A stretch of DNA of 63,620 nucleotides, filler included, from Reticulomyxa filosa (taxonomy: Eukaryota; Protista; Foraminifera), in the NCBI GenBank assembly GCA_000512085.1. It is 15 parts of 15 records of this genome, joined end to end, with 100 filler letters (N's around TTAATTAATTAA, not from the genome) between each part and the next. Parts side by side here need not be neighbours in the genome. Positions count along the whole stretch, not along the records: positions 41,150 to 47,666 come from ASPP01048181.1; 14 more parts are not named here. One strand, written 5' to 3'. Shown piece by piece: positions 41,150 through 47,766 of this stretch; position 1 is the stretch's first letter; every line of letters begins with the position of its first letter. The notes beneath the pieces were generated by a model. It did not search any database. It saw only the letters and a program-made list of their open reading frames with translations, and was not told the origin of the DNA. A program made the position numbers and the translations under genes.

Positions 41150-41620
41150 AAAAAAAAAAAAAAGTGAGTCGAGTCACACTTTTGCTTTGTTTCTTAGCTG
41201 TGTCAATTGGTGGAATGCCGTTCTCTCTTCTTGCAACTTTATGTTTTCTCTAGTGCAACTCTTTATTTCTATCTTGCAACTTCTTGCATTCCTCTTGCAA
41301 GCTGTCGTTTGTAATGTGTGTGTGTGTGCACAATATTATTACCACAACATCGACGAGATAATGGATGAAAATATAAAAAATAAAATTATCAGACGTTTTA
41401 GTCTTTTGCTCGAGTTCTTTAGTGCTGTTCATCGACACAAAAATTCAGAGTCAATTCATTGTGTGTGTTTCAATCACATTTTATTATTATTATTACTATT
41501 TATAAATTTAACTCAGCTTAATTCAATGCAACACAAATGACAAAAAAAAAACACACACACACACCTGTTTAGTTTGTTCCAATTCGGATTTTTCTTCACA
41601 CATTTCAATTATTTTTATTT
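41150..41620 (-). CDS. Coiled-coil gene fragment
   Basis: Short heptad-rich exon-like segments (e.g. SLQEECKKLQDRNKEL); stops present. Confidence 0.3.
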
Positions 41621-43670
41621 GTTTGTTTATTTTGTTGAATATATCCAAGCTAAGTCAGTGGGGATACATAGCACGTAGCATATACAAACATGCTCTTTGC
41701 ACTCACTCCTTTTTTTTAAAAATACATATATATATATGTATATACATATGTATATCAATGTAATAAACTTGAAATTATTTTCCTTACAAAAGAGAGTCCC
41801 AATTCATACCTAACCGAATCTGTTGTATGCTTTTTTTTTTTTTATGTTTAAAAGCTGTGACTATGTTTTTATGTATGAATGTTTGTGCAAACTTTTTTTT
41901 AATTGATGGAGGGAATAAAATAAAAAACAAAGTCACTGATGAATTGTTATTTACCTCCAGATCGTCGTCTATTCCTTTTTTTCTCTTTCTCTTGATTAAC
42001 CAATGTAATCGGTCCGCACAATATATAAGGCAAATACAATATTTGCATAGCTCCACCGCCGTCTTGCTGCTGAGTCCCACTCCTTTAAGAAACTGGAAAC
42101 TGCAACATACCCAAGAACAGATGCCATCCAAGAAAGACAAATGTAGCATATGTCTCTATATGGGCTTGACAGCTTTGAAAATATCCTTATGTTATTACAA
42201 TTCCAAAAAAACCTATTTTTCCTTTGTCTCAACATCTTTCGCTCACTTCTTTTGGACCCTTGTCCAATTTTGTTTGACTGTATCTCCTCAATTTAAATTT
42301 TGTAGTAGCTGAAATTATATAAAAAATATTGTCGTAGTGAAACAAGGAAAAGCAAGTATGTAAATTTGCAATTTTATGTGTGGATTTTTAGAATTGAAAA
42401 AGTGTGCTATCATCTTTTCAAATACTTCACAACTCCCACTGATTCATAAATAACTTTATTTTTAACAATGGTGTTTGTTCTTTTTTTTTTTTTGAGGAAA
42501 AAGCCAAGTCTTTTTGAAAAAAAACTAATTACCCCCATAATTCCCAATAGACAAGATGACAATCAAGACAAAAGTGCTATATCAAAGCAAAACTAAAACA
42601 TTAGCACAAGAATCACGAGGACCTTGGAAACGTTGTCGTCAACAAAAGATGAAGCAAAGGACAAAATCTCGAGTTGTCGAGGTGTCTCTGGTCCAAAGAC
42701 CAGAATTTAACATTGGCCAAAGAAAGCATCAGTTGATGAGTTCTCACGCATGGTGCATTTAGCATTAATGGAGATTTCTAGTGAAGCTTCAGAAGCTGCA
42801 AATGCTACAGCAAGGCGTTGCTTAAACAAAATATTTGGAAAAGATAGTTTCCATCGTCGTATCCGCACTTGTCCTTAACACGCCCTAAGAATAAATAAAA
42901 TGTTGCCATGTGCCAGAATATACAGGTAAGGCAATGATAATTAAAAAAACAAACAATGTGCGCAATTACGTATAAGTGATTTTTGAGAATTTTTTTTTTG
43001 GTATCTCGGTTCTTTTTTTTTTTCACACCCCGTTATGTCCCCTTTCAAAAAAAAAAGTTTGTTGTGAAATCCAGATTGCAAACCGGAATGACCTACCCTT
43101 TCGGTAGATCAATGAACCGAATAAATATTGGCCATGTTTTATTTTGTTGATAAGCCTCCGTTATAGGCATTTTGTTTCTAAGCAACAGAAGATATTGCTT
43201 GGAAATTACTAAAACTTGTCCGGCCGCATAAATTTTTTGAGAGGCAGTGATCTGCCTTTTAGTGGTCTCAACGCAAAGGGGACCAACAACGTGAGGTTGA
43301 GAACCACCAAGGACGTGTTGCAAATATCCGTCCACTATTTTGTCCTTCGCACAATTTGTTGTTGCGTTTTGATTTAAAGGCACAGGCAACGTGCATCGGA
43401 CTATTTTTTTTATGAATTAACTTTTTTTTTAATGATTTAATGAATTTTTTTTGATGAATAAAATGTGCGAAAATTCTGCGCAAATATCTCTTCAGCATTA
43501 CCAATTAATTGTTCAAGCTATTTTCGAAAAGCAATCTCACAAACAATCAAAAGTTTTTGACAATGTTTGTGGTCTAACTTCCATTTATTTTCGAACCTTT
43601 ACAAGTAAAAAAAAACAACAGACATACAAAAATTTAACAGCTAATTTGCCATTTCTATAAATCGATGATG

Positions 43671-43730
43671 CAATCCAATCTTGTCATTACGTCACTACAC
43701 TTCACAGCCAATTAGCGTCACACGTCCAAC
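43671..43730 (+). promoter_or_regulatory. Putative Pol II promoter elements upstream of the array
   Basis: CCAAT 43675-43679, TTACGTCA 43687-43694, GCCAAT 43707-43712 and TAGCGTCA 43713-43720 clustered within 50 bp. Confidence 0.35.
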
Positions 43731-44200
43731 ACACACGTTTCTTGTCGTATACCCCGTCTAAAACTATTTCAACTTCTCATGCAACACACTCCGCAAGTCC
43801 ACACAGTCGTTCCTGAAAACATGTGCATATCGCACAACATTAATTTAAGGGCTCGATGCCCATGTTACAGCATCCCAATTTATCGTCAACATCATCATCC
43901 AACTCCGTCCCACTCATCCAACTCCATATCAATCACACTCCATCCCATGCAATCACAACACACACCTAACTCCACAGTCCCACACACCACACACATACAC
44001 ATACACAATAATACCCCCAACTCCCCATACACACACTCCACATAATTCAAAAGCAATCGGCACTGACACCAACGTCAGGCCGACGCTTACAACAAACATG
44101 GGATGGTGCAATGTAGTACAATCACTACATTCTGTTGTTGCGCAAGCAACACCATCCCCTAACAAAGGGCTCACAGTAATTGCCCCCCCTCCAACAAAAA

Positions 44201-46540
44201 GTTTAGTATTTGTATGTGTGTATATATAACAAAACTTTAAATTTTTTTTTTTATATAGGTGCTAGATGACACTCCGGCACAAAAAACGGGCACAAAGCCC
44301 GAAACAACAAATTCGGGGTTATTATTATATAACACCGATGCTAAAGCGGCTCAAAACCGCAACTCCGGGCTTAAAACCCGTCAAACAAAAAAAAAAAAAG
44401 TTTTGTTGTTGTGTATTTGTTTTTTTTATGTTATAATAATATTATTATTATCATTTATAGGTCCGCGGAGCACAGAGCCACTTATCAAGCGGCCAATCAC
44501 GAGTTCAAAACCCGCATCAATAAAAATAAAAAAAAGTTTTGATTATTTGTTTTATTTCTTGACCATTATTACTCATATGATTGTTTACAGGCATCCTGTG
44601 AACAAGCCAGCTCCTCATGCTCAAACGGGTCTCCACCCTGTTCCCAACAAAAATAAAAAAAGTATCGCTATATTTTATGCCATTTAAATAAATATTATAA
44701 ATTATTACTACATACATAGATCAATTCAACTGAGACCCCGCAACACCCGACAACGGGTTTACAGCCCGTCAACAAAAAATTTGATTGTATGTTCCATTTA
44801 TTTGTAATACTATAATATTATTATCATGCGATGATTGTTTATGAAAAAACTGTACGCATGCACCACAAACGCTCCAACGCGGCTCCGACATGCCAACAAC
44901 AACAAAAAAAGTTTTGTTGTGTTTTTGTTTATATATATATATATAATAATAATGATATAATTGTTTATAGAGCAGCGCAATCAACAACGGGCTCATAACC
45001 CGCATCAATAAAAAAAAGTTTCGCTTATTTGATTGATTTAAAATTATTATTGTTATCATATTGTGATTGTCATTATATTATGATTGTTTATAGTACTACG
45101 ATGCCACATCCACCCAACGTGCGCTCAAACGGGTCTCAAACCCGTCTCCAAGAAAATATAAAAAAGTTTTGACTATTTTTTATTATTTCTATTATTTCTA
45201 TTATTATTAGGGGTTATTATGTGTATAGATCAAATGCATCCGAGACCACCCCATTCAATGCCAGACTACGGGTTTAAAACCCGTCCAACAAAAAAGTTTT
45301 GATGTTGCGTTTTTGTTTTTTATATTATAATAGTAATATTATTTTTATTTATATAGTCGCGGTGCCAGACTAATCCCGCGAGCGCAACCACCGGATCACA
45401 CCTGTATCCAAGAAAAATAAAAAAAGTTTTGATTTATTTTTTTTATTTTTATCAACATTAAATGAGATCATTGTGCACACAGTGCCCCTGCATCAGAGAC
45501 AGCAATCCAACGCACAATAATGGGTTTACAACCCGATTAGCAAAAAAAGTTCTGTTTTTACTTTTTTATATAATAATAATAATATTGTAATCTTTTATAT
45601 TACAGCGGCGCCCGAATCAATCAATCGCGCGACCTGGGTTGACAACCCGTACAAATAAAAAAAAAGAAAAGTTGGTTTATTTGTTTTATTTATTTATTAT
45701 TATTAATCATATGATTATTTACAGGGCTCCGGTGCAATGTCCACATGATGCGCGCTCAAAGGATCTCCAACAAGTCCCCAACAAAAATGAAAAAAGTATA
45801 TATTTATTTTATGTTATTTTTATCATTATTAAAGTTCATTATTGTACTAACAGGCCCTATCTCAGACATCCATTCAACACCACCCAACAAAAAAATGGTT
45901 AATTGTACACTTTATTTATTTATTATAACTATAATGTTATTACAACAAGATGATTGTTTACAGGGCTACAATGCACAGGCAATATCAGTGCCCTCCAACG
46001 GGTGTCCAACAAAAGAAAGTTTTGGTTTCTTTTTTATAATATATACCAATATAAAAAGTAACTATTGCACATAGTGCCATTGCCTCCGACAGCTATCCAA
46101 CACGCGACAATGGGCACCAGCCAGTGCAAATAAAAAAAATAAAAGTTTGGTTTCGATTTGCTTTCTTTTTAGTTATATACATATTATTGTTATTATTCAA
46201 AGGTCAACGTGCCCCTAGTCCGGCCGCAGTGCCAATGGCTCCAACACCAGCATGCCAAGCGGGTTTGTAGCCCGTATGCAAAGAAAAATAAATAAGTTTT
46301 GATTTGTTTTGTTTTTTTCTATATTATAATAAAAGGTTGAACTGTCTTATAGGTCTCCGGCCTCAAAACATCATCCAGCACGTGTCAACGGGTTCCCAAC
46401 ATGTATCAATAAAAATTAAAAAAGTTATGATGTGTTATGTTTTATTTTTAATTACAATAATGTTCTTATTGTTTTTATAGGATCAAAGCAACCAGAACAC
46501 ACTCGAGTGCGTCCTGTGTCAAATAATAATAGAAAAGTTT
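44201..46540 (+). repeat. Diverged tandem array of ~19 units (~126 bp): variable segment + CGGG-N7-CCCG inverted repeat + A-tract + GT...AG intron-like segment
   Basis: Intron-like segments e.g. 44400-44460, 44536-44590, 44662-44719, 44911-44970, 45166-45228, 45296-45356, 45549-45605, 45671-45724. Motif examples: ACGGGTTTAAAACCCGT 45268-45284, ACGGGCACAAAGCCCGA 44286-44302. Confidence 0.9.
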
Positions 46541-46578
46541 TTGTGTTGTTTTTTTAAATATTATTATAACGTGTTCAT

Positions 46579-46701
46579 TCTTTTGTCCTTTTTCTTTGGT
46601 TTTGATTGTTTGTTTTTTATCATTATTTTTTCATTATTTTAACAAATTTTGTTTTGTTGAAAGTAGATCTAATAAATTTCGTATTACATTTTGCAAAGTT
46701 C
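46579..46701 (+). repeat. Dispersed repeat shared with 937-1065, immediately 3' of the array
   Basis: Same collinear blocks as at 937-1065. Confidence 0.8.
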
Positions 46702-47766
46702 ACTTTAGCAGCAGACATTCCACATGAAGATTTTAAGATGAAAGGAAATGTTTTTTTACTTTTGTAGTGTCCATTTCATTATTTCATAGATGTTTGACAC
46801 ATTTAAAAAACTTCAAGTTAGCCAAATAAAAACACTTACCAAGAGTCACAGAAGCCTATTAATTTCAATTACTTCTCAATGACAAAAAAAGTTTTCTTTT
46901 ATTATAAATTCATTTTTGATTGCAGTGATATAAGAAAATAAATCAAAAAAACATCACCAAAAGCACTTTAAAAATTAAAGATGCAATAGTTTATGTATTT
47001 ATTGGTGCTTGTGGAGGTAAACCTTGATCATGTTGTTGGTTGGGGGCAGCAGCATTTGTTGCCATCGTTTTCAAGCCGATACTAAGGTTGTGGTCTGTGT
47101 GGTTGGGGAACACCAGATCTATTGTCAAAAAAATTCAATTTTTTTTTTAAATAAAACTAAAGCAAAACAAGACAATGATAACACCAACATAATACCAGGC
47201 AGTGAGAAAGGAATATTCAGGTTGGATAACTTTTTGTTGTTTTGTTTCTTTCTTTTCTTTTTTTCTTATTGGGCATCTAGTAAATAATTCATCCGTTGCT
47301 CGTTCATAATCATTTTTTCCTTTATAATGATCTGCTGTCAAGGCACTGTTGGTCACCATTTTTTCATCATATTCTTTCTTCTCCCAATTTTTGGTTTTGT
47401 TTCATGTATTCTTCGTACGACACATTACGTTTTTTTTTTCTGTTGTCGATAAATCACCATAGTTTTGTGGTCTAATTCTTCTTTTTTTTGGTGCCTTGGT
47501 GTTGTCTCCTTGTGGGACTGCTGTTTCTTCTTCGGCGTGCTTTTCCCACTGCATCCCGTATTTGTTCAGAAGCGTCTCCCTCAGTTGTGTGCTCCGCTAC
47601 CACGCTTTGAGTTGTCATTGATTGCTTGACCTGTTCCGCTGTGGCCATCGAATTCTCGTTTTTTTTNNNNNNNNNNNNNNNNNNNNNNNNNNNNNNNNNN
47701 NNNNNNNNNNTTAATTAATTAANNNNNNNNNNNNNNNNNNNNNNNNNNNNNNNNNNNNNNNNNNNN

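Follow-up and report, generated by a model that had tools for sequence, protein, structure and literature searches.

Why should a long run of very short exon-like segments keep its splice-like boundaries while keeping no reading frame? This question is raised by a tandem array in the genome of the foraminiferan Reticulomyxa filosa (assembly GCA_000512085.1), located in record ASPP01048181.1, which supplies positions 41150 to 47666 of the window, meaning the whole analyzed stretch of 63,620 nucleotides (nt) in 15 joined parts; all coordinates given here count along that window. In the array, GC-richer segments alternate with AT-rich spacers bounded by GT and AG, and the exon-like segments typically end in a small palindromic motif and a run of A residues. 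Our preferred answer, which we hold tentatively and at somewhat less than an even chance, is that the locus may produce a cis-spliced non-coding tandem-repeat transcript whose exons would repeatedly display a small motif together with oligo(A).

The array is real and non-random, and its anatomy, its pattern of conservation and the absence of a coding signal are direct observations. The piece at 41150-47666 is AT-rich eukaryotic DNA (GC mostly 0.25-0.45), and positions 44137-46575 within it hold a diverged head-to-tail array of 19 plus-strand copies of a module of about 126 bp, as found with a profile hidden Markov model (HMM) in nhmmer at E-values from 5e-24 to 6e-6. The profile was trained on 18 hand-delimited units and also recovered unit 0 (44137-44257, E-value 4.5e-6), which was absent from the training set. 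A repeat search returned families of up to 14 copies at a spacing of about 120-135 bp, while Tandem Repeats Finder did not detect the array because the copies are too diverged. The exon-like segments are A/C-rich, 44-93 nt long and have a GC content of 0.39-0.53, whereas the spacers are T-rich (T 0.53), 54-76 nt long and have a GC content of 0.13-0.24. The variable 5' part of the exons consists of A 0.32, C 0.35, G 0.18 and T 0.15, and the asymmetry lies on the same strand throughout, with C over G and A over T in exons and T over A in spacers. Several units are decayed, with one dead spacer, one collapsed spacer and two truncated cores. A preliminary description had reported about 19 GC-richer segments alternating with AT-rich ones, a segment at 44780-44843 lacking GT and AG, a collapsed spacer between units 1 and 2, and a list of exon lengths mostly not divisible by three. 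All of this holds: the profile finds 19 co-oriented units, the segment at 44780-44843 reads TT...TG, the collapsed spacer is reduced to about 16 nt (44318-44333), and the exon lengths match the list and leave remainders of 0, 1 and 2 on division by three in 7, 4 and 7 cases.

The boundaries between segments and spacers are well preserved. In an alignment of 18 units anchored on both the donor and the acceptor boundary, the six positions before the donor are A in 88-94% of units, followed by G in 17/18 and T in 18/18; positions 3 and 4 are T in 16/18 and 13/18, position 5 is any base and position 6 is G in 14/18, giving the consensus GTTTnG. At the other end the consensus is TTTAYAG, with A at -3 in 17 units, a pyrimidine at -2 in 16 (a degenerate position with T10, C6 and A2), a final A in 17 and a final G in all 18, and positions -8 to -4 are T-rich. 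This alignment bears out the earlier observation of an A-tract before GT and of spacer ends in (T/C/A)AG. The spacer columns neighboring the boundaries are only 27-83% conserved, and the switch in composition falls exactly at GT and AG. The array and its presumed transcript are laid out below, one feature per line.

43656-43661, plus strand: TATAAA, read directly, a candidate promoter element upstream of the A/C-rich first exon
43690-44200, plus strand: putative exon 0, A/C-rich, presumed 5' end, GC skew -0.44 to -0.79; its 3' end is the degenerate unit 0 (core 44167-44185 plus A-run)
44201-44258, plus strand: intron-like spacer 1, GTTTAG...TATAG, 58 nt
44259-44399, plus strand: exon of the fused units 1 and 2, ending in A13; cores 44288-44300 and 44365-44381, collapsed spacer remnant 44318-44333
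44400-44460, plus strand: intron-like spacer, 61 nt
44461-44535, plus strand: exon, 75 nt, core from 44500
44536-44590, plus strand: intron-like spacer, 55 nt, 84% identical to 45671-45724
44591-44661, plus strand: exon, 71 nt, core from 44626
44662-44719, plus strand: intron-like spacer, 58 nt
44720-44779, plus strand: exon, 60 nt, core from 44754
44780-44843, plus strand: dead spacer, both signals lost (TT...TG); neighbors fused into a 191-nt exon closed in three frames
44844-44910, plus strand: exon, 67 nt, degenerate core from 44878
44911-44970, plus strand: intron-like spacer, 60 nt
44971-45017, plus strand: exon, 47 nt, core from 44988
45018-45093, plus strand: intron-like spacer, 76 nt
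45094-45165, plus strand: exon, 72 nt, core from 45130
45166-45228, plus strand: intron-like spacer, 63 nt
45229-45295, plus strand: exon, 67 nt, core from 45269
45296-45356, plus strand: intron-like spacer, 61 nt
45357-45425, plus strand: exon, 69 nt, core from 45391
45426-45482, plus strand: intron-like spacer, 57 nt
45483-45548, plus strand: exon, 66 nt, core from 45521
45549-45605, plus strand: intron-like spacer, 57 nt
45606-45670, plus strand: exon, 65 nt, core from 45635
45671-45724, plus strand: intron-like spacer, 54 nt
45725-45795, plus strand: exon, 71 nt, degenerate core from 45760
45796-45853, plus strand: intron-like spacer, 58 nt, 3' end TACTAACAG
45854-45897, plus strand: truncated exon, 44 nt, core lost
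45898-45963, plus strand: intron-like spacer, 66 nt
45964-46018, plus strand: exon, 55 nt, core without its 3' arm
46019-46074, plus strand: intron-like spacer, 56 nt
46075-46144, plus strand: exon, 70 nt, core from 46111
46145-46202, plus strand: intron-like spacer, 58 nt, ending in AAG
46203-46295, plus strand: longest exon, 93 nt, core from 46260, closed in all three frames
46296-46352, plus strand: intron-like spacer, 57 nt
46353-46423, plus strand: exon, 71 nt, core from 46389
46424-46480, plus strand: intron-like spacer, 57 nt
46481-46536, plus strand: last exon, degenerate, 56 nt
46537-46575, plus strand: start of a final spacer-like T-rich stretch (GTTTTT...) without a matching acceptor; end of the array
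46671-46676, plus strand: AATAAA, read directly, a candidate poly(A) signal of the array transcript

Are the spacers introns? Their interiors contain 9 AG dinucleotides where 23.8 are expected (P<0.001); for GA, the mirror dinucleotide, a count of 20 against 23.8 shows no depletion. The last 15 nt of the spacers have no internal AG. With GT/AG ends and a T-rich 3' region followed by YAG with no late AG, the spacers agree with U2-type introns in these respects, and YTRAY-like motifs adjoin the AG in several spacer 3' ends, for example TACTAACAG at 45845-45853. Acceptor-type selection on the spacers is supported by this pattern, and their size of 54-76 nt, T content of 53% and YTRAY-like motifs would fit minimal spliceosomal introns. 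The sole unit without GT (44780-44843) is also without AG, a correlated loss of the kind that follows when neither end is constrained without the other. Pairwise identity among spacers is roughly two thirds (66-84% among the best-matching pairs), from which we estimate that about 70% of ancestral interior sites are kept per spacer; neutral decay of that extent would have broken about three quarters of the GT/AG sets, but 17/18 are intact. Judged from these boundaries, cis-splicing of some kind at the array is somewhat better than an even bet. Introns on the minus strand were rejected, since their boundaries would read CT...AC, and so were Paramecium internal eliminated sequences and Helitron ends, whose terminal motifs do not match.

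No support for coding was found. The joined exons contain 12-22 stops per frame and no continuous open reading frame (ORF) across the array; their longest open stretch, 148 amino acids (aa), is within the chance range for the composition. Against dinucleotide-preserving shuffles there is no excess of open frames (25 versus 22.7, P 0.25) or of open-frame continuation across junctions (10 versus 7.9, P 0.22), the count of exons with an open frame is unremarkable, and total stops are slightly low (38 versus 45.4, P 0.05). An apparent excess of open frames against mononucleotide shuffles (P 0.005) disappeared with the dinucleotide-preserving ones and is an artefact, because mononucleotide shuffling breaks up the A-runs. 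Mutual information in the variable parts lacks a period of three (lag-3 z 0.4). The distance from exon start to core leaves remainders of 0, 1 and 2 in 5, 5 and 7 units, and the core would therefore be read in every phase; its stem is conserved at all three codon positions while the loop is variable, which is no codon pattern. Symmetric exons with a constant motif phase, as a repeat protein would have, are not seen (lengths 7/4/7 by remainder), and internal 1-2-nt indels outside homopolymers separate related units. No signal peptide or convincing start is visible, and ten raw ORFs as well as an unspliced ORF of 142 aa were without a match in the protein collection. Reading the exons as alternative last exons from the exon 0 frame gave inconsistent outcomes among exons, and a ciliate genetic code or Euplotes-type frameshifting was rejected because the frameshifts in the neighboring uL16 copy are real, it has radical replacements as well, and no other feature fits. 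These results agree with the preliminary description that no reading frame is conserved, with stops in all frames, no period-3 signal and no open-frame excess, and that joining 44461-44779 closes all three frames. They speak against its alternative of A-run miscalls hiding one ORF, since the exons 44720-44910 and 46203-46295 are closed in three frames at any A-run length. Its proposal that selection acts on splicing and on a nucleotide motif rather than on protein stands in part: boundaries and motif are conserved without a coding signal, but the donors are atypical and splicing is deduced from the boundaries.

The three parts of the module have diverged to very different degrees. Expressed as z against shuffles, mean similarity between units is 4.2 in the core and tail together, 3.1 in the spacers and 1.05 in the 5' exon part, as expected from the earlier remark that the 5' part is highly variable while the 3' part and the splice signals are conserved. 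Similarity of the three parts is uncorrelated across unit pairs (r about 0), and the units are therefore mosaic; in the duplicated two-unit block 44494-44719 versus 45629-45853, spacer and core are 81-84% identical while the variable part between them is 61% identical. The variable parts fall into three unit subtypes that are weakly homologous to one another, and they are therefore diverged copies rather than foreign inserts. CpG observed/expected is 0.95 in the variable parts, and this lack of depletion argues against methylation-driven hypermutation. The divergence pattern is compatible with faster-than-neutral evolution of the variable parts, but low-complexity spacers inflate similarity scores and such a rate is therefore not claimed.

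What is conserved inside the exons is a palindrome of 15-17 nt, CGGG-N7-CCCG, often extended to ACGGG...CCCGT. It has a potential stem of 4-5 bp and a loop whose length is fixed at 7 nt and whose sequence is variable, except that loop position 6 is A in 15/17 units. In the 18-unit alignment 80% of stem cells pair, a value that column conservation alone explains, since 420 of 500 shuffles attain it, and double changes, which would count as covariation, are absent from every pair. RNAalifold predicted no consensus structure, and neither single exons (mean z -0.8) nor spacers (z -1.2 to +1.0) fold better than shuffles. The fused exon 44259-44399 does fold strongly, equally so on both strands (z -5.3 on plus and -5.1 on minus), which points to a DNA palindrome effect; here the palindromic cores of units 1 and 2 pair together in a nested palindrome. 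The collapsed-spacer remnant in this exon (44314-44337) is itself a palindromic hairpin, which may relate to the mode of spacer deletion. One-sided stem changes are mostly C-to-T and give G.U wobbles in plus-strand RNA (10 cells), which fits plus-strand transcription. Together with the fixed 7-nt loop and its A at position 6, the wobbles mildly favor a plus-strand RNA hairpin, although a pair of DNA half-sites at fixed spacing would explain the same facts. In Rfam only two chance matches to mir-297 were found, both outside the array (E-values 0.24 and 0.42), and ARAGORN found 0 tRNA genes. An origin from a tRNA or a short interspersed nuclear element was rejected on the lack of an Rfam match and the 0 ARAGORN genes, and mirtrons or a small nucleolar RNA (snoRNA) host gene were rejected because the spacers fold no better than shuffles and have no Rfam match. 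No target complementarity of the variable segments was found inside the piece. Of the inverted repeat noted earlier at the exon 3' ends, the conserved palindrome is present, while as a hairpin it is weak and lacks covariation; the proposal of a structured-RNA precursor or guide array is not supported, given a stem of 4-5 bp, no covariation, no consensus fold and no folding energy beyond shuffles.

The flanks offer a neighbor against which the state of the array can be judged. A uL16/RPL10-like gene lies on the plus strand at about 42600-43130, probably extending to about 43400, and is clearly dead by its sequence: it has two in-frame TAA codons, each standing where uL16 has Phe, three or more 1-nt deletions in short homopolymers, a 9-nt deletion after its intron and many radical replacements at near-invariant residues. 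It retains an intron, GTAAGG...CCAG, at about 42928-43070. Aligned with fungal uL16, the copy shares 29 of 52 residues (56%), and in the Protein Data Bank it matches fungal uL16 best (E-value 1e-9); a full HMMER search returned only uL16 proteins 48-58% identical to the fragment, and the protein collection held no match to it. About 550 bp upstream of its coding region a promoter-like cluster, CCAAT ... TATATAAGG ... ATTTGCAT (octamer), lies at 42000-42050 on the plus strand. Between this pseudogene and the array, the TATAAA at 43656-43661 is followed by an A/C-rich stretch of about 500 nt ending in unit 0, the putative exon 0, whose only ORF (88 aa, 43779-44045) is without a family match and stops before the array. 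Within exon 0, plus-strand positions 43880-44040 are low-complexity and CA-rich (CAACTCC and CACAC motifs, GC skew -0.79), and 44100-44158 can adopt a Y-shaped fold with an 8-bp outer stem around two hairpins, one of 8 bp and one of 5 bp with a GCAA loop (minimum free energy -25.9 kcal/mol; z -3.1 on plus and -1.9 on minus) that has no Rfam or tRNA match. To the right of the array are convergent minus-strand ORFs. Two of them at 47554-47147 share one frame with a single TGA (47402-47404) between them, and their product has a hydrophobic, tail-anchor-like tail of about 20 aa and no Pfam match; an overlapping upstream minus-strand ORF, 47648-47472, switches frame at an A8 run.

We infer transcription, splicing and function from this anatomy as follows. 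The locus would be an RNA polymerase II-type gene on the plus strand, its body derived by tandem duplication of one short module of exon plus minimal intron. The primary transcript would probably start near 43690 and end near 46690, and cis-splicing at A-run|GT and TTTAYAG| would yield an A/C-rich RNA of about 1.7-1.8 kb that gives no protein. Each exon would supply a GC-rich, fast-evolving segment (17-57 nt), the palindrome of 15-17 nt and an A-rich tail, so that the mature RNA would carry about 17 evenly spaced copies of a small motif plus oligo(A). The most economical function would be to serve a motif-binding or oligo(A)-binding factor as multivalent platform or sponge, possibly together with the act of splicing itself; selection would maintain the boundaries, the A-run and a constant distance between motifs and leave the rest free.

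Several points weigh against such a transcript. The extended U2-type donor GTRAGT is absent, with a purine at position 3, A at position 4 and G at position 5 in 2/18 units each, and the sole independent intron in the piece, that of the uL16 pseudogene (about 145 nt), starts GTAAGG. The A-run is conserved as strongly as GT, so GT may be kept as part of a larger block. A single ancestral spacer that already lacked AG could account for part of the AG depletion. The neighboring gene is decayed, and the region may therefore be a graveyard. The binding-platform function is pure conjecture. Finally, a two-unit motif pattern scanned in metagenome, GTDB genome and viral contig collections matched single sites only, 15 in genome contigs (named bacterial records or metagenome-assembled genomes) and 26 in unannotated metagenome loci, with 0 matches in the viral contigs, and the 41 fetched loci hold no array by regular expression or unit profile.

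The atypical donors and the decayed neighbor also feed two other explanations. The array could, although we consider it unlikely, be the relic of a gene for a repeat protein or a multi-peptide precursor with one repeat per exon and basic, K-rich ends, now a pseudogene or with its frame hidden by assembly indels. Tandem exon-intron modules usually reflect a single repeat per exon, the uL16-like gene next to the array is plainly broken, several array units are decayed as well (a dead and a collapsed intron, two truncated cores), the core-to-donor length is a multiple of three in 10/17 units, and stops are slightly fewer than in shuffles (38 versus 45.4, P 0.05). But the motif stands in all three phases from the acceptor (5/5/7) with indels between units that are not multiples of three, the core is conserved in the shape of a stem and loop without a period-3 signal or an open-frame excess, and two exons are closed in all frames at any A-run length. 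A relic would also have to do without a visible signal peptide or start, with an exon 0 ORF of 88 aa that ends before the array and with no protein relative found, and decay like that of uL16 would break about three quarters of the GT/AG sets, of which 17/18 are intact. It is slightly less likely still that the array is not cis-spliced and is either a chain of mini processing units, each with an A-rich end carrying an AAUAAA-like signal, a GU/U-rich downstream element and a trans-splice-type acceptor, or a DNA-level tandem repeat in which a palindrome of the CGG-N9-CCG type is the site for a dimeric DNA-binding protein. The donors are indeed unlike standard 5' splice sites, about half of the tails have AATAAA followed by GTTTTG/T-rich sequence, and the acceptor is the better supported of the two boundaries; the palindrome is without RNA covariation, strong folding is equal on both strands, and the loop, fixed at 7 nt with variable sequence, looks like that of a bipartite DNA site. 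A downstream element needs no fixed GT, however, and here G and T follow the A-run in 17/18 and 18/18 units, whereas AATAAA is missing from about half of them. That one unit has lost GT and AG together speaks for the two ends functioning jointly, the same-strand asymmetry of A/C against T points to a transcribed strand, and the piece holds no spliced-leader gene or other evidence of trans-splicing.

A different use of a spliced precursor, along the lines of the preliminary description, would be as a guide or decoy bank that is cut into unit-length RNAs (variable segment, hairpin handle and oligo(A)) and stands under diversifying selection; we regard this as very unlikely. The variable segments are near saturation (z 1.05) while core and spacers are similar (4.2 and 3.1), the duplicated block with 81-84% identity in spacer and core has 61% in the variable part, the pattern is mosaic (r about 0), and the hairpin has the geometry of an anticodon arm with a 5-bp stem, a 7-nt loop and A at position 6 in 15/17. 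Set against this are the lack of covariation, of a consensus fold, of significant folding energy and of any Rfam or tRNA match, and variable segments that range from 17 to 57 nt and are diverged copies in three subtypes rather than acquired inserts. No complementary target was found in the piece and no processing signal was identified, and since the low complexity of the spacers inflates the scores, evolution faster than neutral is not established. We give even less credence to its widest form, a eukaryotic bank of spliced modules, each with a hypervariable 17-57-nt segment under diversifying selection, a constant anticodon-arm-like hairpin and oligo(A), which would serve as a repertoire of guides, decoys or recognition elements, with unequal exchange among modules as the source of diversity and splicing as the means of maturation. 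In a further variant, the many weak introns would themselves be the purpose, as a built-in trigger for RNA surveillance coupled to splicing or for the making of small RNAs.

Should the array be transcribed and spliced as a non-coding tandem-repeat RNA, nature would have provided a clean example of a non-coding gene that grew by amplification of an exon-intron module, and purifying selection would be visible in it on splice boundaries and one small exonic motif and not on a reading frame. It would then make testable what keeps introns in non-coding RNAs, how far donors may depart from the consensus when the exon ends in an A-run, and whether repeated units of motif plus oligo(A) serve as a binding platform. 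The array would be nothing out of the ordinary if it proved to be an untranscribed repeat or a dead repeat-protein gene.

A literature search returned no described equivalent of the array, but several known systems share parts of its design. SP7-like effectors of arbuscular mycorrhizal fungi carry a signal peptide, their hydrophilic repeats lie within one ORF, and their only conserved intron precedes the first repeat (PMC11333574), and an SP7-like effector gene was rejected since the array has an intron per repeat and no ORF. Aphid bicycle effector genes are mentioned in the same paper (PMC11333574). Like these genes and the micro-exon genes of Schistosoma, the array is a long run of very short exons with fast exon evolution and a conserved gene structure, but both of those groups have one ORF, symmetric fixed-phase exons and a signal peptide, whereas the array has exons distributed 7/4/7 by remainder, all frames closed and no evident signal peptide. 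Spider Flag silk, Chironomus BR3 and titin PEVK likewise consist of tandem exon-intron modules whose introns are at least as similar as their exons; they encode continuous repeat proteins, while the array is without a coding signal. In its splice signals the array resembles Entamoeba-type introns, which also have U at positions 3 and 4 and, close to the 3' splice site and at a constant distance from it, an A resembling a branch point. Of Entamoeba introns, 88-90% have the donor GUUUGU, whose G is at position 5 (bioRxiv 10.1101/2022.06.08.495308). An Entamoeba-type splice code was rejected, as the array has G at position 6 (14/18) and mostly U at position 5, and the neighboring intron has the canonical GTAAGG.

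Other likenesses are with non-coding RNAs. As in NORAD, the FIRRE RRD repeats and the Xist A-repeat, a short motif occurs many times in one presumed non-coding RNA with variable linkers, and a role as platform or sponge has been proposed. The repeats of NORAD, FIRRE RRD and the Xist A-repeat are without delimiting introns of their own, and their binding partners are known, whereas the factor presumed for the array is hypothetical. The SNORD116/SNORD115 host units and the C19MC host gene are, like the array, tandem exon-intron modules with ORF-less, poorly conserved exons and kept splice sites. In SNORD116/SNORD115 and C19MC a functional snoRNA or microRNA lies in the intron, whereas the array spacers are 54-76 nt long, consist of 80-87% A+T, have no Rfam match and do not fold beyond the level of shuffles, and compared with those host genes the best-conserved element outside the splice sites is exonic in the array. 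On this comparison, the array may belong with the tandem exon-intron non-coding genes as a variant, a placement that we make provisionally, and in which the element kept by selection would have its place in the exon rather than in the intron.

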